Below, piece after piece: positions 3,086-59,969 of a stretch of 64,000 bases of DNA (positions are counted from its first letter, which is position 1; every line of letters begins with the position of its first letter). The position numbers and the translations under genes are program-made. The stretch spans positions 1 to 64,000 of the IMG/VR virus record IMGVR_UViG_3300020202_000001; one strand, written 5' to 3'. A model generated the notes under the pieces. That model was not told where the DNA came from, searched no databases, and was given only the letters and a program-made list of their open reading frames with translations.

Positions 3086-3173
3086 GGGTAGCATTTATGG
3101 TCTCATGCGGTTTCGGGCCGCCCGCAACCCCACAGCGGCCCAGTCCAGCGTTTCGTGAAAGGAGTCACGCACC

Positions 3174-3581
3174 ATGCGGACTTTCCGTTCCCGGTTCTCG
3201 GCCCTCGTGGCCGTCGCGTTCCTGTCCTCGCTCCTGCTCGGCCTGACCGGCTGCGGCGGGAAGAACATCAACACCGCCAACACCGGCGGCACGCTGACCG
3301 GCGTCGTCGACCGGCACGACAAGTACGTGCAGGCCGACCCCAACGTCGACCAGGCCGAGGCCCTCGCCGACTCGGCGGTGCTCAGGCAGGCGTGGCAGGC
3401 GGAAAGCGTACCGGCCAACGCGATCGAGGCCCCCTTAAACCGCGTCGCCGACCGGCACGACGGGTACGTCCAGTCGGACGGGACCCTGCCGCCCTACAAG
3501 CAACGCGCGAACCTACGCGACACCGCGATCCTGCGGGAGCTGCTGAAGGTCGGGAGGGCGACACCCGCCACCAACCCCTAA
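3174..3581 (+). CDS. putative lipoprotein
   Basis: Basic N-terminus, hydrophobic stretch, lipobox LTGC. Confidence 0.7.
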   Translation: MRTFRSRFSALVAVAFLSSLLLGLTGCGGKNINTANTGGTLTGVVDRHDKYVQADPNVDQAEALADSAVLRQAWQAESVPANAIEAPLNRVADRHDGYVQSDGTLPPYKQRANLRDTAILRELLKVGRATPATNP

Positions 3582-3659
3582 CGGCCGTCGCCCCGTAGCG
3601 GCGGCCCGCACCGCGTCCACGGACGGACGCACGAGACGACGTGACAAGGAGGTCACCCA

Positions 3660-4448: not shown

Positions 4449-4477
4449 TGCCCTCGACGTGCAAAGGAGTGCACACC

Positions 4478-7200: not shown

Positions 7201-7480
7201 GAAGACCAACGCCCTCGACCCCGAGACGACGCCGAACCACCCGGAGCTGACGCTGCGGGAGGTGCAGATCGCCATCGGGATCGCCGAGGGCAAGACCTAC
7301 CCCGAGATCGGCGACGCGCTGGGCCTCGGGTACGAGACCGTCCGGTCGTACGTCAACCGGCTCCGCGAGAAGACCTGCAGGCGGCGGAAGGCCGAGCTGG
7401 CCATCTGGGCGTCGCAGGAGCGGAGCTGGCTCGAACACCAACAGACCGACCTCACCGCGAAGGGCCAGACCGATGTTTGA
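7193..7480 (+). CDS. LuxR/GerE-family helix-turn-helix regulator (stand-alone)
   Basis: LTLREVQI...AEGKTYPEIGDALGLGYETVRSYVNRLREK. Confidence 0.85.
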   Translation: MAKKTNALDPETTPNHPELTLREVQIAIGIAEGKTYPEIGDALGLGYETVRSYVNRLREKTCRRRKAELAIWASQERSWLEHQQTDLTAKGQTDV

Positions 7481-9255: not shown

Positions 9256-9263
9256 GGTCGCGG

Positions 9264-9600
9264 TGGACGGGACACGCTTCGGCGGGGTATGCTAGTAGCA
9301 GGTAAGCCGTTGGCCGCGAGCGTCGGCCGGTAATGGACGGGTGGCGATGCCAAGGATGGCGACACCACCCACGGAACGGCGTCATGGCGTGAAGGCCCGA
9401 CGCCCGGTGGTGCGACGGAACGCTCAATTCGCCGTCGCAAACGGAGTCACGCTTAGCGGCGTGATACCACGGAGCCGGAAACCGACTCGGACGCGGCGGG
9501 CGAACCGCCGTGACAACCCCGAGGTGGCTGGGGAAACCGGCAGCGAGCTTACCGCAGTACAACGCACGGACGTACCCGTAGAGTCACGGAGGACTCGCCA
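9264..9600 (+). promoter_or_regulatory. putative promoter plus long GGA-rich structured leader or sRNA
   Basis: TGGACG-18-TATGCT; 8 ANGGA motifs in 9333-9591, three in clean hexaloop hairpins. Confidence 0.5.
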
Positions 9601-10690: not shown

Positions 10691-11241
10691 TCGAAGTGCT
10701 CGACGGCCCCGGCTACTGGGACAGGCAGGCGTACGCCCTCGGCAGGCTCAAGGCCGCCGAGGACGACACGCCGACGCCCTCCTACAGCATGTCCGGCCTC
10801 CTGTACGTCTCCGAGGCGTCGGGGCGGCCGTGGGCGTGCCTGTCCGTGCCGAACGCCCTGGTCCGTGGCATGTTCGACGCGCTGACCGAGCCGGGGATCG
10901 AGCTGCCGATGACGGACGGGAAGCTGAACGCGCACATCAGCGTCTTCCGGCCCGAAGAGATCGAGATGCTGGGCGGACCCGAGGCACTAAAAAACGACCG
11001 AGGGAAGCCCTTTCGGTACTCCCTCGGTCGTCTGGTCGAGTTGACCCCGGCGGCTTGGGCCGACATGGCCAAGTGCTGGGTGCTTAGGGTTCATTCGCCC
11101 GAGCTGCAACAGCTGCGTCGAAGCCATGGGCTCTCGGGGCTGCCGAAGGACGGCGAGTACGACTTCCACATCACGGTGGCTGTCAGGCGGAAGGGCGTAC
11201 TCGGTCGCAACGACACCGCCAAGGCTACGGACGCGGCTTAG
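10687..11241 (+). CDS. 2H phosphoesterase superfamily protein
   Basis: Two Hx[S/T]x motifs, HISV and HITV, ~78 aa apart. Confidence 0.75.
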   Translation: MIEVLDGPGYWDRQAYALGRLKAAEDDTPTPSYSMSGLLYVSEASGRPWACLSVPNALVRGMFDALTEPGIELPMTDGKLNAHISVFRPEEIEMLGGPEALKNDRGKPFRYSLGRLVELTPAAWADMAKCWVLRVHSPELQQLRRSHGLSGLPKDGEYDFHITVAVRRKGVLGRNDTAKATDAA

Positions 11242-11729
11242 CAGGCCAGGCTAGGGGCGAAAGGGGACGGGGCCGCCTGACGGTTCTCGCGGCGGATCGC
11301 CTCGTACACTTCCTTACGGTGGACCGGGACGTCGGCCGGGGCCACGAACCCGAGCCGGACCTTGTCGCCGCGGATGTCGACGACCGTGTACTCGCAGGCC
11401 GTGGGTACCTTGTACCCCTCGCCCCTGCCGGCCGCGACCGCGTCGGCGAACTTCTGCAGCTCCGCGGGCTCCACCAGCACGATCGACTCGTCCCGCTGGC
11501 GGGAGAGGACGAGGTTGCCCCCGCCCTTGCGCTCGCGGACCGGCGGCGGCTGGTTGCCCCGGGCGATGTCCTGTAGGATCTGGACGTAGAGTTCCTTGCG
11601 GTAGACCTGGTACTGCTCCGGGGCCTTGATGCCGGTACGGACCTTGTCGCCGCGGATGTCAACGACGGTGACCTCGACGTCATCGCCGATGAGCGTGGAC
11701 TCGTCTCGTTGACGGGAGAGAACGAGCAT
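11238..11729 (-). CDS. csrA: tandem two-domain carbon storage regulator CsrA/RsmA
   Basis: Two repeats of LVLSRQRDES...TVVDIRGDKVR.G..AP....V.RKE.Y; the only well-supported minus-strand gene. Confidence 0.92.
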   Translation of the reverse strand: MLVLSRQRDESTLIGDDVEVTVVDIRGDKVRTGIKAPEQYQVYRKELYVQILQDIARGNQPPPVRERKGGGNLVLSRQRDESIVLVEPAELQKFADAVAAGRGEGYKVPTACEYTVVDIRGDKVRLGFVAPADVPVHRKEVYEAIRRENRQAAPSPFAPSLAC

Positions 11730-11730
11730 G

Positions 11731-11746
11731 ATCGACTCCTTTCGAT
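11731..11746 (-). promoter_or_regulatory. CsrA-type hairpin over the csrA RBS (possible autoregulation)
   Basis: Minus strand reads ATCGA-AAGGAG-TCGAT immediately before the ATG. Confidence 0.65.
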
Positions 11747-11765: not shown

Positions 11766-11794
11766 TTGACTTCCTGACAGCCGGTAAAGATACT
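11766..11794 (+). promoter_or_regulatory. putative sigma70-type promoter
   Basis: TTGACT-17 bp-GATACT. Confidence 0.5.
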
Positions 11795-11838
11795 ACCCCC
11801 GAACGGGGGACGACACAAGCAACACTGGACACATTGCC

Positions 11839-13542
11839 ATGGATGGCACGACGACCGCGCAAATCTGTCTTCCGCGGGTGGAGCTGCCCCCGAGCGGACT
11901 GAACAACGCCCGCTTGGCCTTGTCGAAGCTGGGTGAGGCCCGAGCCCTCGCCGAAGAGGTGGCTTCCGCGGCTGCCGCCACGGACGTAAAACCCACCCTC
12001 GCTCAGCGTAAAGCCGGTAACTACAAGAAGGGGAAGGTCGCCATCCATGGCCTTGTGGTCTCCGTCGAAAACCCTCGGGGCTCATACCGCGAGGGGACCG
12101 CACCGGACGGAAGCAAGTGGCGTACCAAGATGGAGCACCACTACGGCGCGATCACGGGTACGACAGGACGTGACGGCGACGCGGTCGACGTGTTCGTCGG
12201 CCCCGACCCCGACTGCGAGCTGGTGTTCGTGGTCAACCAGAACGACCCGGCGACCGGCCGGTTCGACGAGCACAAGGTCATGCTCGGGTTCACGACCGAG
12301 GCCGACGCGCGGGCCGGGTACCTGGCCTGCTACGAGAAGGGGTGGAAGGGGCTCGGCTCGATCAAGCCGATGACCCTCGACGATTTCAAAAACCGGTTTT
12401 TGAAAGGCGACCTCACCAAGAGGGCCAAGGAAGGCGACCATGCCCGTAGCGAAGATGCCGCCGCAGAAGGTGAACCTGACCGGGAAGATCCTGCGGGGGA
12501 AGGACGGCCGCCGGCGGCAGATGGTCAGCGGCCAGCTCGTGATGCTCGACGGCCCGACGACGCCGGCGAGCAGGGCGGCGACTCCATCCTCGCCGGCCTC
12601 CCCGACGCCGCCGACCGGGAACCACCTGCTGTCGCCGCCGATGGTGATCGCGGACGCGGACGGCCTGGCGAAGGCGGCGAGCCGGGGGCTGAAGGTGGGC
12701 GTGCTGCGGTACCCGGACGGGTCGCTGGCGGTGGTGCACGGCCTGTCGGGGAAGAACCTGCTGACGGACCGCGGCCGGATCGACATGATGGTGACGCAGG
12801 CGGGCCACGACCCGAAGCGGCTGGTGAAGTTCGGGGAGATGAAGGCGGCGGACGTGATCCGCTACCGGCGGGAGAACGCGAAGCTCGCGAACCAGCCGAG
12901 CGGGCGGATGAAGGAGGCGGACGCGGACGCTGGACCGATCTACTCGCTGGTCTCGTCGGGCCTGCTGACGAGCGAGGAGGCGATGGCGATCCTGGGGACG
13001 ATCACGACGCCGACGCCGCAGACGCCGCACGGCCGGCTCCGGGCGATGGGCTTCAAGGACGAGCTGATCGAGACGATCGTGCGGGACAGCCCGGCGTCGC
13101 CGACGATGCTGGCGTCGCCGGCGGCGGCCCCGCCGATGATCCCCAAGCCGGCCAAGGAGAGGAAGCGGCGGATCGACCAGCTCCCCGACCCAAGACCGTA
13201 GCCGTCGACCTCGACGGCACGCTCGCCGAGGAGTACGAGACGTTCGACCCGAAGGTGATCGGCGAGCCGATGCCCGACGTCGTCGCCTGGCTCCGCAAGT
13301 TCAAGGCGACCGGGGCCGTCGTCATCATCTGGACCGTCCGCGGCGACGACGCCCTGGTCAAGGCCTGGGCCGACAAGCACCAGATCCCGTACGACTACAT
13401 CAACGAGAACCCGCACCAGCCGCCGGACAGCAGCGGCAAGCTCGTCGCCGACGTCTACCTCGACAACCGGGCGATCCGGGCGGAGGGGACGTGGGACGAG
13501 TTCGCGCCGGCGGTGCTGGAGCAACTTCAGGAGGCCGCATGA
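11839..13542 (+). CDS. inorganic-pyrophosphatase-like (polyvalent-protein InPase) domain + disordered linker + HAD phosphatase domain; start uncertain
   Basis: AGNYKKG..ENPRGS..YG.I.GT.G.DGDAVDVF..FDEHKVMLGF; C-terminal AVDLDGTLA and DVYLDNRA. Confidence 0.7.
   Translation: MDGTTTAQICLPRVELPPSGLNNARLALSKLGEARALAEEVASAAAATDVKPTLAQRKAGNYKKGKVAIHGLVVSVENPRGSYREGTAPDGSKWRTKMEHHYGAITGTTGRDGDAVDVFVGPDPDCELVFVVNQNDPATGRFDEHKVMLGFTTEADARAGYLACYEKGWKGLGSIKPMTLDDFKNRFLKGDLTKRAKEGDHARSEDAAAEGEPDREDPAGEGRPPAADGQRPARDARRPDDAGEQGGDSILAGLPDAADREPPAVAADGDRGRGRPGEGGEPGAEGGRAAVPGRVAGGGARPVGEEPADGPRPDRHDGDAGGPRPEAAGEVRGDEGGGRDPLPAGEREAREPAERADEGGGRGRWTDLLAGLVGPADERGGDGDPGDDHDADAADAARPAPGDGLQGRADRDDRAGQPGVADDAGVAGGGPADDPQAGQGEEAADRPAPRPKTVAVDLDGTLAEEYETFDPKVIGEPMPDVVAWLRKFKATGAVVIIWTVRGDDALVKAWADKHQIPYDYINENPHQPPDSSGKLVADVYLDNRAIRAEGTWDEFAPAVLEQLQEAA
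12384..12405. repeat. dispersed palindromic motif copy 3 (intragenic, perfect 22-bp palindrome)
   Basis: TTTCAAAAACCGGTTTTTGAAA. Confidence 0.9.
12440..13201 (+). CDS. hypothetical protein nested in another frame within the InPase-HAD ORF
   Basis: Own GCC-AAGGAA-GGC hairpin/RBS; this frame has the genome-typical GC3 and normal amino-acid composition. Confidence 0.65.
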   Translation: MPVAKMPPQKVNLTGKILRGKDGRRRQMVSGQLVMLDGPTTPASRAATPSSPASPTPPTGNHLLSPPMVIADADGLAKAASRGLKVGVLRYPDGSLAVVHGLSGKNLLTDRGRIDMMVTQAGHDPKRLVKFGEMKAADVIRYRRENAKLANQPSGRMKEADADAGPIYSLVSSGLLTSEEAMAILGTITTPTPQTPHGRLRAMGFKDELIETIVRDSPASPTMLASPAAAPPMIPKPAKERKRRIDQLPDPRP

Positions 13543-14018
13543 CGTTCGATCCGAACAAGGTCCAGGTCGTTCCCGCGACCGAGGGCACGACCTACTCGAT
13601 GATCCTCGGGCCGGACGGCAAGCCCGCCCCGGTCCCGCCCCCGGAGCCGCCGAAGCACCAGGTCGGCTTCTACGCCTACGAGACGGTCGGCTACACGCCG
13701 GTCGACCCGTACCCGCAGCCGGTGCCGACCGTCGAGGAGATCGCGGCCCGGTTCCGCGAGGCGCTGGTGCCGTTCATCGGGAAGACGAACGTGACGCAGC
13801 AGCTCGTCACGGCGATCAAGGAGCAGGTGGCAGACATCCTCGACGCGCACGGCCCGCGGTTCACGGTCGAGGCGGTGCCCGAGGAGTCGACGCCCGACAA
13901 GCTGACCGTGCGGATCAGGACCGACGACCCGGTCCTCGGCGCGATGCTCCGCGAGGCGATGAACGCCCCGACCGGCGACGCGTCGATCGAGATGGACTTC
14001 CAACCCGAGAAGCAGTGA
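13539..14018 (+). CDS. hypothetical protein
   Basis: AGGAGG SD, ATGA overlap. Confidence 0.6.
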   Translation: MTFDPNKVQVVPATEGTTYSMILGPDGKPAPVPPPEPPKHQVGFYAYETVGYTPVDPYPQPVPTVEEIAARFREALVPFIGKTNVTQQLVTAIKEQVADILDAHGPRFTVEAVPEESTPDKLTVRIRTDDPVLGAMLREAMNAPTGDASIEMDFQPEKQ

Positions 14019-14362
14019 TGCCCACAGCACAAGAGAAGGCCCACCGCCTGGAACGGCTGATCGCCCTGTACGGAACCGACGACGTCGAGGAGATCGCCCG
14101 CGCGCTGGGCTGCTCCGTCAACGACGTGACGCTCGACCACCTGCCCAACATGGGCGGCGACGGGTTCGGCAACCCGCCCCTCCCGCTGGTCATGAACACA
14201 ACAACGGACAACACCCAAAATCCGTTGTTCAAATTGTGGCAGGACGGACAGACGAGGCCGTTGCATCCCCCGAAGAGGGGGTCCACAATAGGCGGTGCCG
14301 CACTGGAGGCCGCGGTGGCCGCAGTGGTAGACGGCTTGAAGGGTCCGGGTTTGCGTAAGTAG
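14018..14362 (+). CDS. hypothetical protein, possible N-terminal HTH
   Basis: VEEIARALGCSVNDV. Confidence 0.45.
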   Translation: MPTAQEKAHRLERLIALYGTDDVEEIARALGCSVNDVTLDHLPNMGGDGFGNPPLPLVMNTTTDNTQNPLFKLWQDGQTRPLHPPKRGSTIGGAALEAAVAAVVDGLKGPGLRK

Positions 14363-14514: not shown

Positions 14515-15840
14515 ATGTCCCAGGTTCCAACAGCCGCGTCGCCGTCCCCCGACATCAAGGTCCGCAAGCGGTCGGGCAAGGTGGTCGACTTCGCGACGAA
14601 GAAGATCGTGCAGGCCGTGCGGCTCTGCCTCGTGAACGGGTGCCGCCGCGAGGACAACGACGACACGACGACGCTCGCCACGCGGGTCGCCGAACGCATC
14701 ACGGTGATCCTCTCCCGCAACCCCGGCTCCACCGTCACGGTCGAGCACATCCAAGACCTCGCCGAGACGGTGCTCATGTCGTTCGGCGAGCACGACGCCG
14801 CCAAGCACTACATCCTGTTCCGCGACGAGCGCCGCCGCCTGCGGGAAGAGCAGGAGGCCAAGCGGGTCTCGATCTTCAAGAAGCGCGAGGCGTTCAAGCC
14901 GTTCGAGTACCCCGACGTCGTCGCCTACAAGAAGGCGATCCAGCACGCCTACTGGACCGTCGACGAGTTCGAGTTCATCAGCGACCACCACGAGTTCCAC
15001 GTCAAGCTGCAGCCGTACGAGCGGGAGGCGATCACCCGCGCCCTGCTCGCCATCGCGCAGATCGAGGTCAGCGTCAAGCGGTTCTGGGCGAACATCGGGC
15101 TCCGCTTCCCGAAGGCCGAGATCGAGCAGGTGGGCATGGTGTTCGCGGAGAGCGAGGTCCGCCACGCCGACGCCTACTCGCACCTGCTGCAGGTCCTCGG
15201 GCTCGACAGCGCGTTCGACGACATCCTCAAGGTCCCGGCCATCCGCGCCCGCGTCGACTACCTGCAGGAGTCCCTCAAGGGGGCCGGCAAGTCGGAGGAC
15301 GACGAGTACGCCATGACCCTCGCCCTGTTCTCCCTGTTCGTGGAGAACGTCTCGCTGTTCAGCCAGTTCGCGATCGTGAAGAGCTTCAACAAGCACCGGC
15401 AGGTGCTCAAGGACGTCGACAACGTCGTCCAGGCGACGCAGAAGGAAGAGCAGGTTCACGCCCTGTTCGGCGTCTGCCTCGTCAACCACATCCGCGCCGA
15501 GCGGCCCGAGTGGTTCGGGTCCGACTTCTACGACAGGCTCAACGCCATCGCCCAACGGGCGTTCGAGGCGGAGTCCAAGATCATCGACTGGATCTTCGCG
15601 GAGGGCGAGCTGCCCTTCCTCCCGAAGGCGTCGCTGGTCGAGTTCATCAAGCACCGCATGAACGAGAGCATCGCCATGATCGGCGGCTCGGGCCACTTCA
15701 TCGTGGACGAGCAGGCGATCGAGGGCATGCGGTGGTTCACCGACGAGATCGCGGCCGACGTTCGCGCTGACTTCTTCCACAAGCGGAACGTGCTGTACAC
15801 GCAGGGCGAGAAGGCGTACGACGCCAACTCGCTCTTCTGA
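14515..15840 (+). CDS. nrdB: class I ribonucleotide reductase beta subunit with N-terminal ATP cone (class Id/NrdBi-like)
   Basis: VRKRSGKVVDF..KI..AV, VEHIQDLAE ATP cone; QIEVSVK, ESEVRHADAY, ENVSLFSQF, EEQVH; DFFHKR..Y. Confidence 0.93.
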   Translation: MSQVPTAASPSPDIKVRKRSGKVVDFATKKIVQAVRLCLVNGCRREDNDDTTTLATRVAERITVILSRNPGSTVTVEHIQDLAETVLMSFGEHDAAKHYILFRDERRRLREEQEAKRVSIFKKREAFKPFEYPDVVAYKKAIQHAYWTVDEFEFISDHHEFHVKLQPYEREAITRALLAIAQIEVSVKRFWANIGLRFPKAEIEQVGMVFAESEVRHADAYSHLLQVLGLDSAFDDILKVPAIRARVDYLQESLKGAGKSEDDEYAMTLALFSLFVENVSLFSQFAIVKSFNKHRQVLKDVDNVVQATQKEEQVHALFGVCLVNHIRAERPEWFGSDFYDRLNAIAQRAFEAESKIIDWIFAEGELPFLPKASLVEFIKHRMNESIAMIGGSGHFIVDEQAIEGMRWFTDEIAADVRADFFHKRNVLYTQGEKAYDANSLF

Positions 15841-15917
15841 TTTCCCGGCGGACGCTTCCCGACACTCGACCGGACCACGGCGGCCCCGCGCCGCCACGAC
15901 GACCTTTGGGACAACTC

Positions 15918-17645
15918 ATGAGCACGAACGATTACGTCTGGCTGAACCCCGACTCGCAACGCTTCCTCGAAATGGACTACCTGCTGCCCGGCCAGACGGT
16001 CGACCAGCGGGTCGACATCATCTGCAACCGCGCCGAAGAGATCCTGAACCGCGACGGCGTGAAGCGGCCGGGGTGGGCCGCGAGGTTCAAGGCGAACGTC
16101 AAGAAGGGCTGGTACAGCTTCTCGTCGCCGGTGTGGGCCAACTTCGGCGTCACCCGCGGGCTGCCGATCAGCTGCTTCGGCTGCAACATCAACGACAGCG
16201 TGAAGAGCATCATGCAGGCCCACTACGAGGCCGGCATGATGTCCAAGTACGGCGGCGGGACCAGCGGCTACTTCGGCAACATCCGACCGCGCGGCACCCC
16301 GATCAAGGACAACGGCGAGTCGGCCGGCACGGCCAACTTCGCCCTGATGTTCGAGACGCTCATCAAGGTCATCAGCCAGGGCAGCACCCGCCGCGGGCAG
16401 TTCGCCGGCTACTGGCCGATCGAGCACGGCGACATCATGGAGGTCCTGCAGTTCCGCTCGAAGGGGCACGACATCAAGCAGATGTCCTTCGGCGTGTGCG
16501 TCCCCGACGAGTTCATGGAGCGGATGATCGGCGGCGACATGAAGGCCCGCCAGATCTGGGCCGAGGTCCTCAAGGCCCGCGCCCGCACCGGCTACCCGTA
16601 CATCCTGTTCATCGACAACGCGAACAAGTACGCCGTCGACGTCTACCGCGACAAGGGGATGCGGATCGTCGCGAGCAACCTGTGCACGGAGATCATGCTC
16701 CCGGCGACGGCCGGCGACTCGCTGACCGAGCAGGCGACCGGCGTCCGCACGACGGGCGGCGCGGCCGAGGAGGGCGAGAGCTTCGTGTGCGACCTCGGCT
16801 CGATGAACGACCGGTACTACGACGACTGGAAGGACACCGACGCCGTCCAGCTGAAGGTCGAGTTCCTCGACGCCGTCATGACGGACTTCATCGACCGGGC
16901 CACGGGCAAGGCCGGGATGGAGCGGGCCGTGCGGTTCGCGACCCGACACCGCGCCCTCGGACTCGGACAGCTCGGGTACCACGACTACCTGCAGTACAAG
17001 AACGTGCCGTTCGAGAGCATGCAGGCCAAGCGGTACAACGCCGAGATCTCGCAGACGATCCAGCGGCAGGCCCTCGAAGCGTCCCGCCGGCTCGCGGCCG
17101 ACTACGGCGAGCCGGAAGTGCTCAAGGGGTACGGCCGGCGGAACACGACGCTGACCGCGATCGCCCCGACGATGTCGTCCAGCTTCATCCTCGGCGGCGC
17201 GTCGCAGGGCATCGAGCCGTGGCAGGCGAACTACTTCATCCGCGACCTGCAGAAGGGGAAGTTCACCATCGTCAACCAGCAGCTCAAGGCGGTGCTGGCG
17301 GCGAAGGGCAAGGACGACCGCGAGACGTGGGAGTCGATCCTCAAGCACGGCGGCAGCGTCCAGCACCTCGACTGCCTCGACGCCCACGAGAAGGACGTCT
17401 ACAAGACGTTCGCCGAGATCAACCCGATGGAGATCGTCGTGCAGGCGGCGCAGCGGCAGAAGTACCTGTGCCAGGGCCAGTCGACGAACCTGCTGATCGA
17501 CCCCAAGGTGTCGGTGAAGGACGTCAACGCCCTGTACGTCGAGGCCTGGCGTCTCGGGGTGAAGTCGCTGTACTATCAGATCAACGAGAACGCCGCGCAG
17601 CAGTTGAGCCGGTCGATCCTCACCTGTTCGAGCTGCGAGGGCTGA
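15918..17645 (+). CDS. nrdA: class I ribonucleotide reductase alpha subunit (no ATP cone)
   Basis: LPISCF, GGGTS, SNLCTEI, AIAPTMSSS, KSLYY, C-terminal CSSCEG. Confidence 0.95.
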   Translation: MSTNDYVWLNPDSQRFLEMDYLLPGQTVDQRVDIICNRAEEILNRDGVKRPGWAARFKANVKKGWYSFSSPVWANFGVTRGLPISCFGCNINDSVKSIMQAHYEAGMMSKYGGGTSGYFGNIRPRGTPIKDNGESAGTANFALMFETLIKVISQGSTRRGQFAGYWPIEHGDIMEVLQFRSKGHDIKQMSFGVCVPDEFMERMIGGDMKARQIWAEVLKARARTGYPYILFIDNANKYAVDVYRDKGMRIVASNLCTEIMLPATAGDSLTEQATGVRTTGGAAEEGESFVCDLGSMNDRYYDDWKDTDAVQLKVEFLDAVMTDFIDRATGKAGMERAVRFATRHRALGLGQLGYHDYLQYKNVPFESMQAKRYNAEISQTIQRQALEASRRLAADYGEPEVLKGYGRRNTTLTAIAPTMSSSFILGGASQGIEPWQANYFIRDLQKGKFTIVNQQLKAVLAAKGKDDRETWESILKHGGSVQHLDCLDAHEKDVYKTFAEINPMEIVVQAAQRQKYLCQGQSTNLLIDPKVSVKDVNALYVEAWRLGVKSLYYQINENAAQQLSRSILTCSSCEG

Positions 17646-17722
17646 GCACGCCGGTAGTCGTGCGGGTGACGTAGCCCGCCGACGCTCACGGCAAGAGACC
17701 CCTCCGTTCTAGGAGACGCGCC

Positions 17723-17800
17723 ATGGCCACGAAGAAGGCTCCCGCGAAGAAGCCGGCCGCCAAGAAGCCGGCCGCGAAGAAGACGACCAAGGGCAAGTAA
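17723..17800 (+). CDS. 25-aa Lys/Ala/Pro-rich histone-H1-tail-like peptide
   Basis: MATKKAPAKKPAAKKPAAKKTTKGK; AGGAG SD; terminator follows; below the ORF-track cutoff. Confidence 0.7.
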   Translation: MATKKAPAKKPAAKKPAAKKTTKGK

Positions 17801-17826
17801 GCCCGGTCGCCACGCACCACGAACAC

Positions 17827-19066: not shown

Positions 19067-19101
19067 GACGGACACGCGCGCGAAGCAAGGAGGCTTCGAT
19101 C

Positions 19102-19446
19102 ATGGGACAGAAACAGCACGGCGTCGAAGGCCAGACCTCGGTCCCCCCGGGACTGCAGGCCCTTTACCGCTCGCTCAAGGAGATCAAGGACAGCGCCCAG
19201 TGCGGCGTCGACAAGCCCGAGGCCGTTACGCGGATGGTCGTGCTCGACGCGCTCATGCTGTTCGCGAAGCTGACGGGCAGGCCGCCCCGCCTGATCCACA
19301 TCCCGCCCTCGCTGGAGGCCGTGCTGCAGATCGACCGGGGCCAGAACCTGGGCATGCCGTCCAAGACGCACGGCAAGCTCCGGGAGCACGAGCTGGTGTT
19401 CACCTGCCGCCCCGTGTGGGACGCGGCCGAGTTTCGTGTAGAATGA
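19102..19446 (+). CDS. hypothetical protein
   Basis: ATG after the CGAAGC-AAGGAG-GCTTCG hairpin. Confidence 0.6.
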   Translation: MGQKQHGVEGQTSVPPGLQALYRSLKEIKDSAQCGVDKPEAVTRMVVLDALMLFAKLTGRPPRLIHIPPSLEAVLQIDRGQNLGMPSKTHGKLREHELVFTCRPVWDAAEFRVE

Positions 19447-19956: not shown

Positions 19957-20319
19957 ATGGACGCGCGTACCGCATTTAAGCAGGGCTTCATCGCCCACTG
20001 CATCGAGCTGGGACACACCGACCCGGCCGCGATCCGCGACATCGTCAAGCAGGCGTTCGTCACGGAGGCGGTCAACAAGGTCACGAACTTCGCCACCGGG
20101 GCCGGCAAGCTCGGCCTCGGGCTCGCCCTCGCCGCCCCGCCGATCGTCGGCGGCGTCGCCGGCCACCTCGCGGCCAAGGCGACCGACGTCTCGGACTACG
20201 ACGTCGAGGAGGCCAAGAAGCAAGAGGTCATCGACGAGTACCGCCGCCAGGCCGAGCGCATGCGGCGGTCCGGGCTGCTGCGTCGGTACACGGCGGGCGG
20301 GCCGGGCAACCTGCTCTAA
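19957..20319 (+). CDS. putative virion protein with hydrophobic Gly/Ala helix
   Basis: AAGGAGG SD; KQA motif. Confidence 0.6.
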   Translation: MDARTAFKQGFIAHCIELGHTDPAAIRDIVKQAFVTEAVNKVTNFATGAGKLGLGLALAAPPIVGGVAGHLAAKATDVSDYDVEEAKKQEVIDEYRRQAERMRRSGLLRRYTAGGPGNLL

Positions 20320-21646: not shown

Positions 21647-24600
21647 ATGGGCCGCCTCGGATCTGGCATCAACATCATGGGGGATTCGGACCTCGGCATC
21701 ATGGACGCGATGCCGGGGTTCGTCTCCGCGCCCATGCAGCTGCAGGCCCCGAAGCCCGTCGAGGAGGTCGAGGCCGAGCCCGAGGGGCTGCGGGCGTTCG
21801 GCGACGTGGACGCGACCCGCAAGGCGATCTACGACTCCGTGTTCGAGGCCGCCTCGAAGATGGAGCCGACGAAGAACCAGAAGCACACGCTCCGGCTGAC
21901 CGGCGTGCAGTGGCAGGACCCGGACAAGTTCACGATCCGCCAGCGGAAGGAGGCCCTGCTGCGGGGCGAGACGCTCGGCCGCCGGCTCAAGGGCACCTGG
22001 GAGCTGCTCGACAACGCGACGAACCAGGTGATCGACCGCCGCGAGCAGACCGTGCTCCGCGTCCCGCACCTGACCGGGGGCGGCACGTTCGTCCACAACG
22101 GAAGCGACTACGCGCTGGGCAACCAGCAGCGGCTCCGCTCGGGCATCTTCGCCCGCGTGAAGGACAACGGCGAGTACGAGTCGCACGTCAACGTGCTGGA
22201 GGGCGGCCCCTCGCACAAGATCCAGCTGAACCCGGAGAAGGGCGTCTTCTACGTCAACATCGGGCAGGCGAACATCCCGCTGCTGCCGCTGCTGCAGACG
22301 CTCGGGGCGAGCGAGAAGGACCTCCGCGCGGCGTGGGGCGACGACCTGTACGCCCGGAACTACCAGAAGGCGGACGGGACGGCGATGGCGAAGATCGTCG
22401 CCAAGTTCCTGAAGAAGCCGCCGGTCGACGGCACGAGCACGGCCGACGCCCTCCGCCAGACGTTCGAGAACATGCGGCTCGACCCCGAGGTCACCAAGCG
22501 GACGCTCGGCCAGCCGTACGACCGCCTGGGCAAGGACGCGCTGGTCGCCGCGACCGCCAAGCTCCTGCGGGTCCACCGCAAGGAGGAGGAGCCGGACGAC
22601 CGCGACCACCTCGCGTACCAGACGTTCCTCGGCCCCGAGGACCTGTTCGCCGAGCGGCTCCGCAAGGACCGCGCCGGCGTCCGCCGCAACATGCTCTTCA
22701 AGATCAGCGGCAAGGGCAGCCTGCGGGCGATGGGCTCCAGCCCGCTGCAGGACCAGATCGACTCGGCGATCATGTCGTCGGGGCTCGGCCAGGCCCTCGA
22801 AGAGATCAACCCGGCGGAGATCCTCGACAAGAACACGAAGATCAGCCGGATGGGCGAGGGCGGCATCCCGAGCTACGACGCGGTCCCCGACGAGGCCCGC
22901 GCCGTGCAGCCGTCGCACTTCGGGTTCATGGACCCGCTCCGCACCCCGGAGAGCTTCAAGGCCGGCGTGGACGTGTTCCTGAGCGGCAACGTCCGCAAGG
23001 GCCGCGACGGGAAGCTGTACGGCCGGTTCGTCGACGCCCGCACCGGCAAGCCGGCGTGGAAGACGCCGCAGGAGGTCGCGGACGCCGTCGTCACGTTCCC
23101 GGGGGCCGACAAGCTCCCGTACAAGCGCATCCCCGCGATGAAGAACGGGCGGATGGGCTGGGCGACCCGCGAGGAGGTCGGCCTGGTGCTGCCGACGATG
23201 GAGCACGCGTTCAGCCCGATCGACAACCTGATCCCGCTCAAGAGCCAGCTCAAGGGCCAGCGGGCCAGCATGGCGAGCCGGATGACCACCCAGGCCCTGC
23301 CGCTGGTCGGCGCTGAGGCCCCGCTGGTGCAGAGCGGCCTGCCCGGCTCCAAGGGCGAGCGGAGCTACGAGGAGGAGTACGCGAAGCACATGGGGGCCGT
23401 CGTCGCCGACCGCGGCGGCAAGGTCCTGGCCGTGACGCCGGACGCGATGACGGTGAAGTACGACGACGGCAAGGTCGACACGATCGAGCTGTACAACAAC
23501 TTCCCCTACAACCGCAAGACGGGCATCACGCAGACGCCGACCGTCAAGCCCGGCCAGCGGTTCGAGGCCAAGCAGCCGATCGCCCGGTCGAACTTCACGG
23601 ACGACAAGGGGGCCGCCGCGCTGGGGCTCAACGCCCGCGTCGCGTACATGCCGTGGGGCGGCCAGAACTTCGAGGACGCGATCGTCATCAGCGAGGGCAT
23701 GGCCAAGCGGATGACGTCCGAGCACATGTACCAGAACGGGCTGGAGGTGAACGACCGCACGAAGGTCGGCCGCAAGGAGTTCATCTCGCTCTTCCCGTCG
23801 AAGTACGACAAGGCCACGCTGGCGAAGCTCGACGATAAGGGCCTCATCAAGCCCGGCACCCAGGTCCACTTCGGCGACCCGCTGATCCTCGCCGCCGAGG
23901 AGCGGAGCACGGCCCAGAACAAGATCCACAAGAAGGGCACGCCCGCGTTCAACGACGTGTCCGTCACCTGGGACCACCACGACCCCGGCATCGTCACCGA
24001 CGTCGTCGAGGGCAAGAACGGCCCGGTCGTCCTGGTGAAGAGCCAGCACCCGATGCAGGTCGGCGACAAGATGAGCGGGCGGTACGGCGACAAGGGCGTC
24101 GTCAGCGCGATCATCCCGGACGACCAGATGCCGCACGACAAGGACGGCAAGCCGTTCGAGGTGCTGCTGAACGACCTGGGCGTCATCAGCCGGACGAACC
24201 CGAGCCAGTGGGCCGAGGCCAAGCTCGGGGCGATCGCCGCCAAGCTGGGCAAGGCGATGAAGGTCGAGGACTTCGACCCGGCGGTCGAGGACCGCGCGGC
24301 GTGGGTCGAGGAGCAGATGCGGAAGCACGGCATCCCCGACCAGGAGGACGTGACCGACCCGGTGCGGGGGACGAAGATCCCGGGCATCTCGACCGGCAAC
24401 CGCTTCTTCATGAAGCTCCACCACACGGCCGAGTCCAAGGGGCAGGGCCGCGGGTCGGGCGCGTACGCCTCGGACGACACGCCGGCCAAGGGCGGCGAGA
24501 CGGGCAGCAAGCGGAACTCGCTGCTGAACGTGAACGCCCTGCTCTCGCACGGGGCGACCGACTACCTGCAGGACGTCGGGGCGATCAGCGGCCAGCGGAA

Positions 24601-26152
24601 CGAGGACTACTGGCTCCAGTTCATGCAGGGGTTCTCGCCCCGCAAGCCGAAGGTCCCGCTCGTGTACGAGAAGTTCGTCAACGAGCTGAAGGGGGCCGGG
24701 ATCAACGTCGTCCGCGAGGGCAGCCAGCTCCACGTCATGGCGCTGACGGACAAGGACGTCGACCACCTGGCCGGCGACCGCGAGATCGAGGTCGGCGACA
24801 CGGTCGACTTCTACAACGAGCTGAAGCCCGTGAAGGGCGGCCTGTTCGACAAGACGAAGACCGGCGGCCACCACGGCAACCGGTGGGCGGCGATCAAGCT
24901 CGCGGAGCCGATGCCGAACCCGGTCATGGAGGAGCCGATCCGCCGCGTGCTCGGGCTGACGCAGAAGCGGTTCGAGGACGTGATCGCCGGCCGCGAGCCG
25001 CTGAACCCGCAGACCGGGGCGACCGGCCCGCGGGCGATCGCCGAGGCCCTGAAGACGATGAACGTCGACCGGGAGATCGCGATCGCCCGGGCGAAGATCC
25101 AGAACGGCACGAAGGCCGAGCGGGACATGGCCGTGCGGAAGCTCGGCTACCTCAAGAGCGCGAAGAAGACGGGCGTCCTGCCGGGCGACTGGGTGCTGAA
25201 CCGCGCCCCGGTCCTGCCGCCGCAGTTCCGCCCCGTGAACGTGATGGGCGGGAAGAACGTACCGCTCGTCGCGGACGCGAACTTCCTCTACAAGGAGCTG
25301 TTCGAGGCGAACAAGAACCTCCGCGACATGAGCGAGCAGGTGGGCGACGACGTCGGCGACGAGCGGCTGGCGGTGTACCACGCGTTCAAGGCGGTCACGG
25401 GCCTCGGCGAGCCGATCACGCAGAAGAGCCAGGAGAAACAGGTCAAGGGAATCCTAAAATCGGTTTTTGGATCTTCGCCGAAGTTCGGCACCGTGCAGCG
25501 GAAGCTGATCGGCTCCACGGTCGACAACGTCGGCCGGGGCGTCGTCGTCCCGAACCCGGACCTCGACATGGACAGCGTCGGGCTCCCGGAGGACCGGGCG
25601 TTCGACGTCTACAGCCGGTTCGTCGTCCGCCGCCTCCGCCGCTCGGGCATGCCGATGGCCCAGGCCCTGCGGCACGTCAAGGACAAGAGCCCGCTGGCCC
25701 GGAAAGTGCTGGTCGAGGAGATGGACCACCGGCCGGTGGTCGTCAACCGCGCCCCGGTGCTCCACCGGTTCGGCATCATGGCGTTCCGCCCCAAGCTCGT
25801 GAAGGGCTCGGTGCTGCACGTCCCGCCGCTGATCGTGAAGGGCTTCGGCATGGACTTCGACGGCGACGCGGTGCAGTACCACGTCCCGACGAGCGAGGAC
25901 GCCCGGGCCGAGGCCCTCGACCGGATGCTGCCCAGCCGGCAGCTGCTGAGCCCCGGCGACTTCAAAAGCCCCGTGCACGTCCCGGGGCAGGAGTACGTCG
26001 GCGGGCTGTACAAGGCGACGAGCGGCCGCAGCAAGCGGCCGGTCCGCTACTTCCGCAGCGCCAAGGACGTCCGCCACGCCTGGGAGCACGGTGAGGTCGC
26101 GATCGACGACGTCATCAAGGTCCTGGGCGACGCGGTCGCGGCGAAGCGGTAG
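21647..26152 (+). CDS. phage multisubunit-type RNA polymerase: beta fused to the N-terminal catalytic half of beta'
   Basis: beta motifs SHFGFMDPLRTPES, MPWGGQNFEDAI, GDKMSGRYGDKGVV, MKLHH; beta' motifs GGLFD, PVLPPQFRP, NRAPVLHR, catalytic GMDFDGD. Confidence 0.92.
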   Translation: MGRLGSGINIMGDSDLGIMDAMPGFVSAPMQLQAPKPVEEVEAEPEGLRAFGDVDATRKAIYDSVFEAASKMEPTKNQKHTLRLTGVQWQDPDKFTIRQRKEALLRGETLGRRLKGTWELLDNATNQVIDRREQTVLRVPHLTGGGTFVHNGSDYALGNQQRLRSGIFARVKDNGEYESHVNVLEGGPSHKIQLNPEKGVFYVNIGQANIPLLPLLQTLGASEKDLRAAWGDDLYARNYQKADGTAMAKIVAKFLKKPPVDGTSTADALRQTFENMRLDPEVTKRTLGQPYDRLGKDALVAATAKLLRVHRKEEEPDDRDHLAYQTFLGPEDLFAERLRKDRAGVRRNMLFKISGKGSLRAMGSSPLQDQIDSAIMSSGLGQALEEINPAEILDKNTKISRMGEGGIPSYDAVPDEARAVQPSHFGFMDPLRTPESFKAGVDVFLSGNVRKGRDGKLYGRFVDARTGKPAWKTPQEVADAVVTFPGADKLPYKRIPAMKNGRMGWATREEVGLVLPTMEHAFSPIDNLIPLKSQLKGQRASMASRMTTQALPLVGAEAPLVQSGLPGSKGERSYEEEYAKHMGAVVADRGGKVLAVTPDAMTVKYDDGKVDTIELYNNFPYNRKTGITQTPTVKPGQRFEAKQPIARSNFTDDKGAAALGLNARVAYMPWGGQNFEDAIVISEGMAKRMTSEHMYQNGLEVNDRTKVGRKEFISLFPSKYDKATLAKLDDKGLIKPGTQVHFGDPLILAAEERSTAQNKIHKKGTPAFNDVSVTWDHHDPGIVTDVVEGKNGPVVLVKSQHPMQVGDKMSGRYGDKGVVSAIIPDDQMPHDKDGKPFEVLLNDLGVISRTNPSQWAEAKLGAIAAKLGKAMKVEDFDPAVEDRAAWVEEQMRKHGIPDQEDVTDPVRGTKIPGISTGNRFFMKLHHTAESKGQGRGSGAYASDDTPAKGGETGSKRNSLLNVNALLSHGATDYLQDVGAISGQRNEDYWLQFMQGFSPRKPKVPLVYEKFVNELKGAGINVVREGSQLHVMALTDKDVDHLAGDREIEVGDTVDFYNELKPVKGGLFDKTKTGGHHGNRWAAIKLAEPMPNPVMEEPIRRVLGLTQKRFEDVIAGREPLNPQTGATGPRAIAEALKTMNVDREIAIARAKIQNGTKAERDMAVRKLGYLKSAKKTGVLPGDWVLNRAPVLPPQFRPVNVMGGKNVPLVADANFLYKELFEANKNLRDMSEQVGDDVGDERLAVYHAFKAVTGLGEPITQKSQEKQVKGILKSVFGSSPKFGTVQRKLIGSTVDNVGRGVVVPNPDLDMDSVGLPEDRAFDVYSRFVVRRLRRSGMPMAQALRHVKDKSPLARKVLVEEMDHRPVVVNRAPVLHRFGIMAFRPKLVKGSVLHVPPLIVKGFGMDFDGDAVQYHVPTSEDARAEALDRMLPSRQLLSPGDFKSPVHVPGQEYVGGLYKATSGRSKRPVRYFRSAKDVRHAWEHGEVAIDDVIKVLGDAVAAKR
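25451..25472. repeat. dispersed palindromic motif copy 5 (inside RNAP gene)
   Basis: ATCCTAAAATCGGTTTTTGGAT, within a run of rare codons gga atc cta aaa tcg gtt ttt gga tct. Confidence 0.8.
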
Positions 26153-26172
26153 CGTCAAGGAGGACGCGCACC

Positions 26173-28782: not shown

Positions 28783-28816
28783 GCCACGGACGGCGACACA
28801 CAAGGCACGGAGGCCT

Positions 28817-36458: not shown

Positions 36459-36517
36459 TCCCCCGCAGCATCGCGTGGCAAGGACGCCGCGACCCCTGAC
36501 AGCAACGGAGTGCTCCG

Positions 36518-37162: not shown

Positions 37163-37190
37163 CTGCTCCTCCTGGTCACGGACGACCGAC

Positions 37191-44223: not shown

Positions 44224-44307
44224 CGCGGCCAGTCACGAACGTGTGTCCACTGAACCGGGCGGCATGAGGCCGTCCTCGAAACCCAGAAGATCACGGAGGA
44301 TCACCTT

Positions 44308-44766: not shown

Positions 44767-44858
44767 GCACCCGGGGGCGGCGACGCCCAACTGTGTCTCT
44801 TTCAACCTGAACGGATTCGCTGGGCCAGCCATGGCCCTTGTCACGGAGGACAATCACA

Positions 44859-45401: not shown

Positions 45402-45523
45402 GCACCGGGAGCAGTCGCAGCAGTGTTCTTTTGAGTCACCGTAGGCCGGTTACGCCTCAGGGATGAGGCGAGGCCTGCGGGAGACGGATCGACAACCACG
45501 ACAACGATCACGGAGGATCGACC

Positions 45524-54074: not shown

Positions 54075-54150
54075 ACCTATCGGCGGCGGTTATAGTGGAT
54101 GGCTCGCGGCCACGGACGGCCGCCCCCACGCGACAGAGCAAGGAGGCTCC

Positions 54151-56920: not shown

Positions 56921-56963
56921 GACGGATCTCGACAACCCCAACATTGGCACGGAGGCCAGTATC

Positions 56964-59858: not shown

Positions 59859-59969
59859 TCGGTCGAGTGAGTGAGGCCTTTCCCCCGGGGGCAACGTCGC
59901 CCCCGGGGGTCTTGCAAGGAAGCAAGGAAGCTGCCCCCGGCCCGGGGGCTCGGTTAAGGAGAACCGACC

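Follow-up and report, generated by a model that had tools for sequence, protein, structure and literature searches.

A phage csrA gene encoding a predicted single-chain double CsrA regulator

A 224-kb soil phage, probably of Planctomycetota (IMG/VR record IMGVR_UViG_3300020202_000001; positions 1 to 64,000, the 64,000-nucleotide stretch analysed here and called the window), was found to encode two fused and unequal copies of the RNA-binding regulator CsrA in one polypeptide. About 30 of the phage genes, csrA included, carry hairpins of the textbook CsrA-binding type on their ribosome-binding sites (RBS), which suggests a phage-run translational control circuit, though RNA binding is inferred and was not measured here. 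The tandem CsrA had been noted in a sequence-only reading of the window, and that observation was confirmed.

The csrA gene (coordinates 11238–11729, minus strand) encodes a protein of 163 aa (P0001), starts with ATG and has a proper coding pattern (GC1/2/3 of 0.73/0.41/0.90). The Pfam CsrA model (PF02599) scored 120 bits against a cut-off of 27, in two stretches. A scan of the genome placed domain 1 at 11577–11729 (74 bits, model positions 1–51) and the rear part of domain 2 at 11292–11387 (44 bits, model positions 21–52), and a local HMM also found the first two strands of domain 2 at aa 73–86. The two halves are 42% identical (E 8e-14) with a single 23-residue gap. The gap corresponds to an insertion, E87–A111 (11397–11471, minus strand), between strand 2 (aa 82–86) and strand 3 (aa 112–120) of domain 2, as had been proposed from the sequence. 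The linker (11514–11561, minus strand; aa 57–72, RGNQPPPVRERKGGGN) is 16 aa rather than the approximately 20 aa first proposed. The claim that both halves keep the RNA-binding Arg motif also held, with R44 in VYRKE and R138 in VHRKE. That csrA is the only supported minus-strand gene is essentially right for the window, as the other flagged minus-strand ORFs (7297–7455, 19164–19403 and 13691–14266) have shadow-type GC patterns, while the data allowed no judgement on a 46-aa ORF at 17686–17826.

A structural model had been named beforehand as a check on the single-chain arrangement, and AlphaFold2 (AF2) gave one compact fold for the monomer (pLDDT 95.8, pTM 0.85). Each unit was predicted to have five strands and a C-terminal helix. 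Domain 1 (aa 1–56; 11562–11729, minus strand) has strands at 2–7, 11–14, 18–26, 29–35 and 41–44 and a helix at 45–56, and includes the variant residues Y40, Y43, L47 and I55. Domain 2 (aa 73–152; 11274–11513, minus strand) is consensus-like, with strands at 73–78, 82–86, 112–120, 123–129 and 136–138, a helix at 139–152, and N149 as the equivalent of N55. No secondary structure was predicted in the linker (pLDDT about 89), and a helix was predicted at aa 88–99 within the insertion (pLDDT 96–98). Residues 1–57 superposed on solved CsrA, RsmA and RsmE chains at 0.6–1.0 A, and beta-sandwich matches spanned residues 1–134. As the coordinates were not inspected and there is no experimental structure, these data leave an intertwined two-unit sandwich with two RNA-binding faces undecided, and the strand-by-strand pseudo-dimer topology and the position of the insertion relative to the faces are inferred from pTM, secondary structure and superpositions.

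The same asymmetric tandem occurs in at least three related phage contigs (L003, L004 and L010), in the same inverted position between 2H-SAK and InPase genes. In an alignment of the clade, R6 and R77 are kept, R44 is invariant and R138 nearly invariant, G71 of the linker is invariant, and the motif ELxxFADAV..G..Y in the insertion is shared with the homologues P0002 and P0123. Domain 1 sequences group together and domain 2 sequences group together, indicating that the duplication predates the clade. The asymmetry of the halves is also conserved, as Y43 is present in 8 of 9 phage domain 1 sequences, whereas H is found in 202 of 208 single-domain relatives, and position 47 is L or I in 8 of 9 (V in one), against V in 198 of 208. 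Domain 2 keeps the consensus but carries the insertion.

A search for other two-domain CsrA proteins and a phylogeny had also been named in advance, with a finding that tandems are common and purely host-derived set to count against the reading. Tandem CsrA was found to be rare but recurrent (about 50 of 259 top hits), to have arisen several times and to occur also in cells, and it is therefore neither a one-off nor unique to phages. Examples include P0003 on an 854-kb cellular contig, a 131-aa protein in AFDB (A0A5C5VJ65) and an Atlas cluster of 105-aa proteins in Peregrinibacteria, in which two CsrA units in one chain have a compact predicted fold. However, in several of these other tandems (e.g. 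P0003, P0018, P0168 and P0182) the two halves are each other's closest relatives, i.e. recent duplications, only P0012 shows even a short insertion in domain 2, and the Y43 face and the phage context are absent. No description of tandem or single-chain CsrA was found in the literature, in searches confined to open-access papers. Fusion of CsrA units recurs across phyla, often with loss of the FliW-contact residue.

An RBS hairpin, AUCGA-AAGGAG-UCGAU (11731–11746, minus strand), lies one base before the csrA AUG and is the predicted local fold (-4.2 kcal/mol). This 16-nt hairpin is identical in the four phages, whose proteins are 50–59% identical, and in L004 it heads a two-gene operon that ends in csrA. 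It is not a significant feature of the whole 124-nt leader, which does not fold better than shuffles (z -0.36); the minimum free energy (MFE) fold pairs the upstream GGA with CUUCCUG, a partner that is not conserved in L003. Non-coding DNA is about as conserved between the window and L003 as coding DNA (0.78–0.83 against 0.75–0.79), and no extra conservation is claimed beyond the identical hairpin. The exact 18-mer of the RBS hairpin gave 2 hits in IMG/VR and 64 in metagenomes, most of them unrelated genes or chance matches; only the window's own contig, the L010 lineage and one divergent single-domain CsrA carry csrA downstream.

An upstream AGGAAG was considered as a second CsrA site in the csrA leader and rejected. 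Its core, GAAGTCAA, is invariant in the four phages and is the reverse of a TTGACT -35 box located 17 nt from GATACT on the plus strand, while the GGA is absent in L010 and its distance to the hairpin varies from about 7 to 29 nt. The conserved AGGAAGTCAA upstream of csrA is therefore better read as the -35 box (TTGACT) of a divergent sigma-70-like promoter (TTGACT-17-GATACT; 11766–11809, plus strand) that faces InPase and is followed by the conserved GC hairpin CCCCCGAACGGGGG. The csrA leader thus has only one good site.

The new result is that the RBS hairpin is not special to csrA. Of 199 phage genes, 29 have a stem of at least 4 bp plus an ANGGAN hexaloop on the Shine-Dalgarno (SD) sequence, against 1.5 +/- 1.3 in flank shuffles, so at least 28 other genes have the same architecture and the hairpin is not a private autoregulatory site. 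The stems differ between genes while the loops are constant (AAGGAG or ACGGAG), and the closing pair is C-G in 20 of 29, matching the published preference for ANGGA in a hairpin. Eleven have a second, upstream ANGGA(C/U/A) hairpin, 21–63 nt away, that cannot serve as an SD. Genome-wide, 72 strict hairpins were found on the plus strand, against 9 on the minus strand and 19.9 +/- 5.3 in shuffles. A relaxed definition (loops of 4–8 nt, GU pairs allowed) was too permissive in this 69% GC DNA (57 observed against 40 +/- 5 expected), and the strict hexaloop definition was used instead. Strict hairpins at gene starts occur at 12.5 per 100 kb in the phage (26 in the rich block), against 0.8 per 100 kb in 400 kb of a Phycisphaerales chromosome, indicating that this is not a general RBS style.

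Paired sites in several leaders, as proposed in the sequence-only reading, were found on the plus strand of the window. These are at 3613–3656 (ACGGAC hairpin plus SD hairpin AAGGAG, GGA to GGA 27 nt, before GTG 3660), 36474–36514 (AAGGAC plus SD hairpin ACGGAG, 25 nt apart, before ATG 36518), 54106–54149 (ACGGAC plus SD hairpin AAGGAG, 28 nt apart, before GTG 54151), 56915–56960 (ACGGAU plus SD hairpin ACGGAG, 27 nt apart, before ATG 56964; both hairpins appear in the MFE fold) and 59910–59967 (AAGGAA plus SD hairpin AAGGAG, 40 nt apart, before ATG 59970). A single SD hairpin, cgaucACGGAGgaucg (45505–45520, plus strand), before ATG 45524 is close in sequence to host flagellin RBS hairpins, and other single SD hairpins lie at 145–160, 3154–3169, 4459–4474, 9581–9596, 19081–19098, 26152–26167, 28803–28816, 37173–37188, 44289–44302 and 44838–44853. 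Searches of Pfam and PHROGs with hairpin-bearing and large genes named few of them and revealed no temporal or functional class. A 344-nt non-coding stretch (9256–9599, plus strand) with 8 ANGGA motifs, 5 times the background, ends in the SD hairpin of gene 9600. It is syntenic and 78% identical in L003, with 23 compensatory pairs in a two-sequence consensus fold, and is a candidate multi-site CsrA-binding leader or decoy RNA.

The nearest cellular CsrAs are almost all from Phycisphaerae and other Planctomycetota, supporting the Planctomycete affinity that had been suggested from the N-terminus, though the host is inferred only from CsrA similarity. In 48 of 80 Planctomycetota csrA loci, the neighbouring flagellin gene (Pfam-confirmed) has caaucA(A/C/U)GGAGgauug on its RBS, and fliW sits next to csrA there; in two Phycisphaerales chromosomes fliW was found adjacent to csrA. 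This FliW-CsrA-flagellin partner switch, which is also present in B. subtilis, is likely the ancestral circuit of the donor clade. The 224-kb phage genome has no FliW match and no flagellin. N55, which is needed for FliW binding, is present in 188 of 208 single-domain relatives but in 0 of 9 phage domain 1 sequences and 2 of 9 phage domain 2 sequences. As domain 1 of P0001 has I55 while domain 2 has N149, the residue does not settle whether this protein is of the FliW-controlled type.

The interpretation first given, a pre-assembled pseudo-dimer with specialised faces that avoids mixing with host subunits, was partly supported. The explanation favoured here, with moderate confidence, is a natural single-chain CsrA in which the two units fold onto each other into the intertwined beta-sandwich that normal CsrA makes from two chains, giving two RNA-binding faces that are no longer identical. 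In this view, face A (strand 1 of domain 1 plus strand 5 and the helix start of domain 2) would be consensus-like, whereas face B (strand 1 of domain 2 plus strand 5 of domain 1) would carry the clade-specific changes Y40, Y43 and L47, with the linker entering beside it. The protein would bind GGA presented in short hairpin loops that cover the SD of its own mRNA and of about 30 other genes, and in about a third of these a second hairpin lies upstream at a spacing that one bivalent protein could bridge. Binding would block ribosome access, so that the protein would feed back on itself and shut down or tune one block of the genome (about 200–224 kb plus 0–60 kb). The domain content, asymmetry, conservation and predicted fold, and the enrichment, shape and location of the hairpins, come directly from the analysis, whereas RNA binding, repression, autoregulation, timing and insulation from host subunits and FliW are inferences from them, made without any binding, expression or structural experiment. 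No RNA sequencing run contained this phage, which was found only in soil metagenome DNA runs. The hairpins could equally be served by the host's own CsrA. Being pre-assembled, the protein would not form mixed dimers with host CsrA, and FliW could dock on at most one side. However, one FliW per dimer suffices to inhibit B. subtilis CsrA, and as domain 2 retains N149, FliW resistance is doubtful for this particular protein.

A more speculative possibility, not excluded but considered unlikely, is a phage-private switch built from a heterobivalent clamp, in which the two unequal faces would read an upstream ANGGA(C/U/A) hairpin and the SD hairpin A(A/C)GGAG in a fixed orientation and at about 25-nt spacing. 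This would give a specificity that the symmetric host CsrA cannot have, insulated from subunit exchange and largely from FliW, and would time the expression of about 30 genes in one third of a jumbo-phage genome, with the conserved 344-nt multi-GGA RNA as a possible built-in decoy or antagonist.

Among the alternatives, it is possible but unlikely that the protein acts mainly on the host's Csr circuit, either repressing flagellin and other host CsrA targets or soaking up FliW through the intact N55 helix of domain 2 so that host CsrA is freed, the phage hairpins then being read chiefly by host CsrA. Consistent with this, host-clade genomes have fliW-csrA next to flagellin with the same RBS hairpin, the phage has no fliW, domain 2 keeps RRENRQAA including N149, and domain 2 is 79% identical to a single-domain relative from a search set dominated by Planctomycetota. 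However, most clade members (7 of 9) have lost N55 in domain 2 as well, which argues against FliW capture as the conserved role, and the 16- to 33-fold excess of such hairpins on phage genes over a host-like chromosome, together with the perfectly conserved hairpin on csrA itself, points to phage mRNAs as targets.

It is less likely that the hairpins are CsrA-independent translation elements presenting the SD in a loop and that the tandem CsrA is a passenger gene of host origin with no role in phage gene expression. The loops contain GGAG and are SD sequences in any case, the exact 18-mer also precedes unrelated genes in metagenomes, and the whole-leader fold is not significant. Against this, eleven leaders carry the second hairpin that cannot act as an SD, a host-like chromosome rarely uses this RBS form except on flagellin and fliW beside csrA, and the tandem gene, its position and its leader are conserved across a phage clade. 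Related tandem-CsrA phages also share the hairpin density (18.8 per 100 kb), while phage loci with single-domain CsrA have 2.9 per 100 kb.

It is similarly doubtful that the chain does not close on itself and that domains pair between chains, giving dimers or chains of tandem proteins with four or more RNA sites. CsrA protomers are obligate strand-swappers, and no multimer was modelled, but the AF2 monomer is compact and confident, linker included. Other natural tandems have linkers of only 9–14 aa and some are circular permutants (P0027 and P0160), both of which fit intramolecular pairing, and AFDB and Atlas hold compact single-chain double-CsrA models of 100–131 aa. Fusion of two adjacent csrA genes by an assembly or frameshift error is very unlikely, as nothing was found in its favour, the frame is continuous with a uniform coding GC pattern, the same 163-aa sequence is found on 2 contigs, and homologous fused proteins with a conserved linker glycine occur in independent samples.

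Compared with CsrA/RsmA/RsmE homodimers (PDB 1Y00, 1VPZ, 2BTI and 2JPP), both halves match the family HMM, the Arg44 equivalent and strand 1 motif are kept twice, and the presumed ligand, GGA in a hairpin hexaloop over the SD, is shared, as is the potential of a bivalent protein to bridge two sites. However, one chain replaces two, so the two inferred faces can differ and do. In RsmN/RsmF of Pseudomonas aeruginosa (PDB 4KJI and 4K59) a helical insertion lies at exactly the same strand 2 to strand 3 connection (16 aa in RsmN, 25 aa in domain 2 here), and RsmN chains align to parts of both halves of the model at 30–35% identity. However, RsmN lacks the C-terminal helix and is a two-chain dimer with re-routed topology, whereas here domain 2 keeps its helix, only one unit has the insertion and there is no sequence kinship beyond the family level, and the protein was therefore not assigned to RsmN. 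Phage- and plasmid-borne CsrA homologues, such as the RsmM type in P. aeruginosa phages F116 and phi297, have been catalogued (PMC7366521), and 81 hits in GenBank phages and 204 loci in IMG/VR were found here. Those are single-domain (80 of 81 CsrA ORFs in the best IMG/VR loci), and their functions are largely uncharacterised. A functional analogue is T4 RegA, which binds the RBS region of many phage mRNAs, including early mRNAs, and of its own mRNA to shut off a temporal class; its fold and recognition are unrelated, and its role is demonstrated whereas that of the tandem CsrA is proposed.

CsrA is one of the best-studied bacterial RNA regulators, and its two-fold symmetry has shaped every model of how it bridges two sites on an mRNA. 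A natural single-chain form with diverged faces would offer a ready-made system for asking what each face does, which until now has needed engineered heterodimers. The approximately 30 canonical candidate sites, many of them paired and one on csrA itself, make a concrete, testable regulon for a phage-borne csrA, and link phage gene control to the FliW-CsrA-flagellin circuit of Planctomycetota. Rfam gave no family in the window, and two tRNAs called by ARAGORN lie antisense inside coding regions and are probably false.

The window forms the first 64 kb of a 224418 bp IMG/VR virus record with direct terminal repeats, which was assembled from soil metagenomes and has 69% GC. The ORF at 11238–11729 on the minus strand starts with ATG and encodes a protein of 163 aa, and its GC1/2/3 values of 0.73/0.41/0.90 follow the pattern of real genes in this genome. 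Pfam identified CsrA (PF02599) in the product at 120 bits in two stretches, which a scan of the genome placed at 11577–11729 and 11292–11387, and a local HMM added the first two strands of domain 2 at aa 73–86. The two halves share 42% identity with a single 23-residue gap, which corresponds to an insertion, E87–A111, in domain 2, and both halves retain LVLSRQRDE and the key arginine (R44 and R138). A hairpin, AUCGA-AAGGAG-UCGAU, was found at 11731–11746, one base before the AUG, and is the predicted local fold. The other minus-strand ORFs in the window resemble shadows of plus-strand genes, except for one 46-aa ORF that was not assigned either way, and the tRNA-Tyr and tRNA-Lys called by ARAGORN at 3438–3526 and 20067–20146 (minus strand) lie antisense inside plus-strand coding regions and are probably false positives. 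Hence, the sequence-only reading, in which two unequal CsrA domains are joined in one polypeptide with a hairpin on the RBS of its gene, was correct as an observation.

A model of the monomer had been proposed beforehand as a way to examine the single-chain reading, and AlphaFold2 was run on an alignment of 48 natural tandem CsrAs, giving a mean pLDDT of 95.8 and a pTM of 0.85. In the model, unit 1 (aa 2–56) consists of five strands and a helix, and the linker (aa 57–72) is unstructured but confident (pLDDT about 89). Unit 2 includes strands at 73–78 and 82–86, a new helix at 88–99, strands at 112–120, 123–129 and 136–138, and a helix at 139–152. Residues 1–57 superpose on solved CsrA, RsmA and RsmE chains at 0.6–1.0 Å, and generic beta-sandwich matches span residues 1–134. 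As a CsrA protomer is not a stand-alone domain, a confident compact model of the whole chain implies a closed pseudo-dimer, although the coordinates were not inspected and both the strand pairing and the position of the inserted helix are inferred. The insertion is located at the connection between strands 2 and 3, where RsmN has a 16-residue helical insert (PMC3791407). However, unlike RsmN, domain 2 retains its C-terminal helix, and the protein was therefore not classified as RsmN.

A search for two-domain CsrA proteins together with a phylogeny had likewise been set out in advance. Only single-domain CsrA was found in GenBank phages (81 records), and one tandem (in the phage locus L010) was found among the best 80 IMG/VR loci and none among the best 80 loci from species-representative genomes. 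However, about 50 of the 259 proteins retrieved from the large protein collections, out of 12995 CsrA-family clusters at 50% identity, have two full domains, indicating that tandems are rare but recurrent. One of them (the protein P0003) is encoded between uvrB and uvrA on an 854 kb cellular contig. AFDB and the ESM Atlas also hold compact single-chain double-CsrA models, for example a 131-aa 'Translational regulator CsrA' and a 105-aa cluster in Peregrinibacteria, together with compact 100–125-aa 'carbon storage regulator' and 'Vir region protein' models that align to both halves of the protein studied here, and a cluster of natural CsrA-FliW fusion proteins (237 aa, Thermodesulfobacteriota). 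In two metagenomic tandems, P0027 and P0160, the second unit is circularly permuted, with strands 3–5 and the helix first and strands 1–2 at the C-terminus, which fits an intramolecular pseudo-dimer. No paper describing tandem CsrA was found in the open-access literature searched. In a domain tree, several tandems have their two halves as sisters, which indicates repeated recent duplications.

A distinct group, comprising the window protein (P0001), the retrieved proteins P0002, P0004, P0006, P0015, P0122, P0123 and P0128, and the L010 protein, shares the asymmetry seen in the window. The domain 1 sequences of this group cluster together and the domain 2 sequences mostly cluster together, although support is weak because only 56 columns were available. 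Where context is available, the group is phage-borne and syntenic, with csrA alone on the opposite strand and convergent with a 2H-SAK phosphoesterase gene. In the window, L004 and L010, csrA is also divergent from an InPase gene, and ribonucleotide reductase genes lie nearby in the window, L003 and L004 (L003 and L004 being, like L010, related phage contigs). At 11238–11241, the stop codons of csrA (minus strand) and the 2H-SAK gene (plus strand) overlap by about 4 nt, as they also do in L003, hence the convergent transcripts must overlap and plus-strand read-through would be antisense to csrA. On the other side, the 567-aa 'InPase' ORF (11839–13542, plus strand) codes in its own frame only at both ends, as InPase up to about 12430 and as a HAD-like part from about 13190. 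Between these, the +1 frame has a GC3 of about 1.0 and holds an ORF of 253 aa (12440–13201), with no stop in frame 0, thus the region may represent three genes with a read-through shadow, or frame shifting, two possibilities that were not distinguished here.

The asymmetry of the halves is conserved. Position 43 is H in 202 of 208 single-domain relatives and in 8 of 9 phage-clade domain 2 sequences, but Y in 8 of 9 phage-clade domain 1 sequences. Position 47 is V in 198 of 208 single-domain relatives, but L or I in 8 of 9 phage-clade domain 1 sequences (V in one), with the consensus V in domain 2 of the window protein (V141). Position 40 is I or V in 201 of 208 single-domain relatives, whereas in the window it is Y in domain 1 and the consensus V in domain 2 (V134). 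By the known geometry, each face is built from strand 1 of one unit plus strand 5 and the helix start of the other (PMC7366521). One face is therefore consensus-like, whereas the other carries the domain 1 changes, with the linker entering beside it. The domain 2 insertion varies in length across the clade, with P0002 and P0123 sharing the ELxxFADAV..G..Y motif of the window protein.

The 16-nt hairpin on the csrA RBS is 100% identical in the window, L003, L004 and L010, though their proteins are only 50–59% identical and their GC content ranges from 57 to 69%. In L004, the hairpin precedes an extra 152-aa ORF whose end overlaps the csrA start, and so it still heads the csrA transcription unit. 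The conserved AGGAAGTCAA further upstream is best explained as the −35 box of a sigma-70-like promoter facing the InPase gene (TTGACT-17-GATACT), and one CsrA-type site, not two, was therefore counted in the csrA leader. A GC hairpin (CCCCCGTTCGGGGG on the minus strand) at 11796–11809, between csrA and InPase, is conserved as a stem-loop with changed stem letters in L003, L004 and L010. It scans as a minus-strand terminator but lies at about +1 of the predicted InPase transcript, and no role was assigned to it. Among metagenome hits to the 18-mer of the RBS hairpin (L182–L245), the exact sequence ATCGAAAGGAGTCGATCA was also found to precede unrelated recurring genes, for example those for proteins starting MHRKDAIAWVV and MNISMNSMIANTLFG, thus the sequence by itself is not specific to csrA.

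The genome was further examined for hairpins under a strict definition, a perfect stem of at least 4 bp closing a hexaloop A-N-G-G-A-N. On the plus strand, which carries nearly all genes, 72 strict hairpins were found, against 9 on the minus strand and 19.9 ± 5.3 in dinucleotide shuffles. With gene starts called from codon-position GC, 29 of 199 genes have such a hairpin over the Shine-Dalgarno (SD) sequence, whereas flank shuffles gave 1.5 ± 1.3 with a maximum of 7 in 300. The stems differ from gene to gene while the loops are constant (AAGGAG in 12 and ACGGAG in 8) and the closing pair is C-G in 20 of 29, which is the pattern expected of a selected RNA shape and not of a DNA operator. In 11 of the 29, a second ANGGA(C/U/A) hairpin, which cannot be an SD, is present 21–63 nt upstream, often at 25–28 nt. 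The sites are concentrated at 200–224 kb plus 0–60 kb, with 22 of 79 genes there against 7 of 120 elsewhere in a hexaloop count of 28, and this block includes the RNA polymerase subunit genes and the reductase genes. A 344-nt non-coding stretch upstream of the gene at 9600 (9256–9599, plus strand) holds 8 ANGGA motifs, 5 times the background, and had no match in Rfam. It is syntenic and 78% identical in L003, and a two-sequence consensus fold has 23 compensatory pairs, including a long stem that presents AAGGAU. It may be a multi-site CsrA leader or a decoy RNA.

The nearest cellular CsrAs are almost all from Phycisphaerae and other Planctomycetota. In 48 of 80 such loci (L090–L169), a flagellin gene next to csrA carries the highly conserved hairpin (ga)caaucA(A/C/U)GGAGgauug(uc) on its RBS, and one of these was confirmed as flagellin using Pfam. 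The fliW-like genes in those loci carry similar hairpins (acgaaACGGAGuucgu), and 11 of the 80 csrA genes have a strict hairpin on their own RBS. In two Phycisphaerales chromosomes, fliW is located directly upstream of csrA. This is likely the ancestral FliW-CsrA-flagellin circuit known from B. subtilis. Away from that locus the hairpin is rare, as strict hairpins at gene starts occur at 0.8 per 100 kb in 400 kb sampled from one of those chromosomes, against 12.5 per 100 kb in the phage and 26 in the rich block. Related tandem-CsrA phage contigs have a similar density (18.8 per 100 kb), whereas phage loci with single-domain CsrA have 2.9 per 100 kb. The hairpin is therefore not the ordinary RBS style of the host, but marks CsrA targets in cells and has been multiplied in this phage lineage.

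CsrA N55 is required for FliW binding (bioRxiv 10.1101/2020.07.02.184341). This residue is present in 188 of 208 single-domain relatives, but in only 7 of 29 domain 1 and 11 of 29 domain 2 sequences of other tandems, and in 0 of 9 domain 1 and 2 of 9 domain 2 sequences of the phage clade. Domain 2 of the window protein is one of the two that retain it (N149), and escape from FliW is therefore uncertain for this particular protein. The phage has no fliW. Thus, fusion tends to go with loss of the FliW contact, in tandem CsrAs in general and not only in the phage clade.

It is most likely, though only somewhat more likely than not, that this protein is a pre-assembled CsrA with two different faces, which would bind these hairpins, bridge the paired ones, and repress its own translation and that of one class of phage genes, functionally like T4 RegA. 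The sequence, its conservation, the predicted fold and the site statistics are established by the analysis, whereas binding, repression, timing and insulation are inferred from them. A mainly host-directed role on flagellin or FliW is possible but unlikely, and it is more doubtful still that the hairpins are unrelated to CsrA and the gene a passenger, or, slightly less likely again, that oligomers form by swapping between chains. An assembly artefact can be all but dismissed. The interpretation offered in the sequence-only reading, of a pre-assembled pseudo-dimer able to specialise each face, is supported in part. The tandem is not unique in nature and is not strictly a phage invention. However, while the CsrA family itself is known, the conserved asymmetric phage form, the RsmN-like insert and the candidate regulon of roughly 30 genes are, as far as could be found, undescribed, and they are directly testable.

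The phage also encodes multisubunit RNA polymerase pieces (21647–26152 and 28817–31573, plus strand), namely a 1501-aa protein with Rpb2 and Rpb1 domains and a 918-aa protein with Rpb1 domain 5, as well as both ribonucleotide reductase chains (14515–17645), and is a jumbo phage with its own transcription apparatus.
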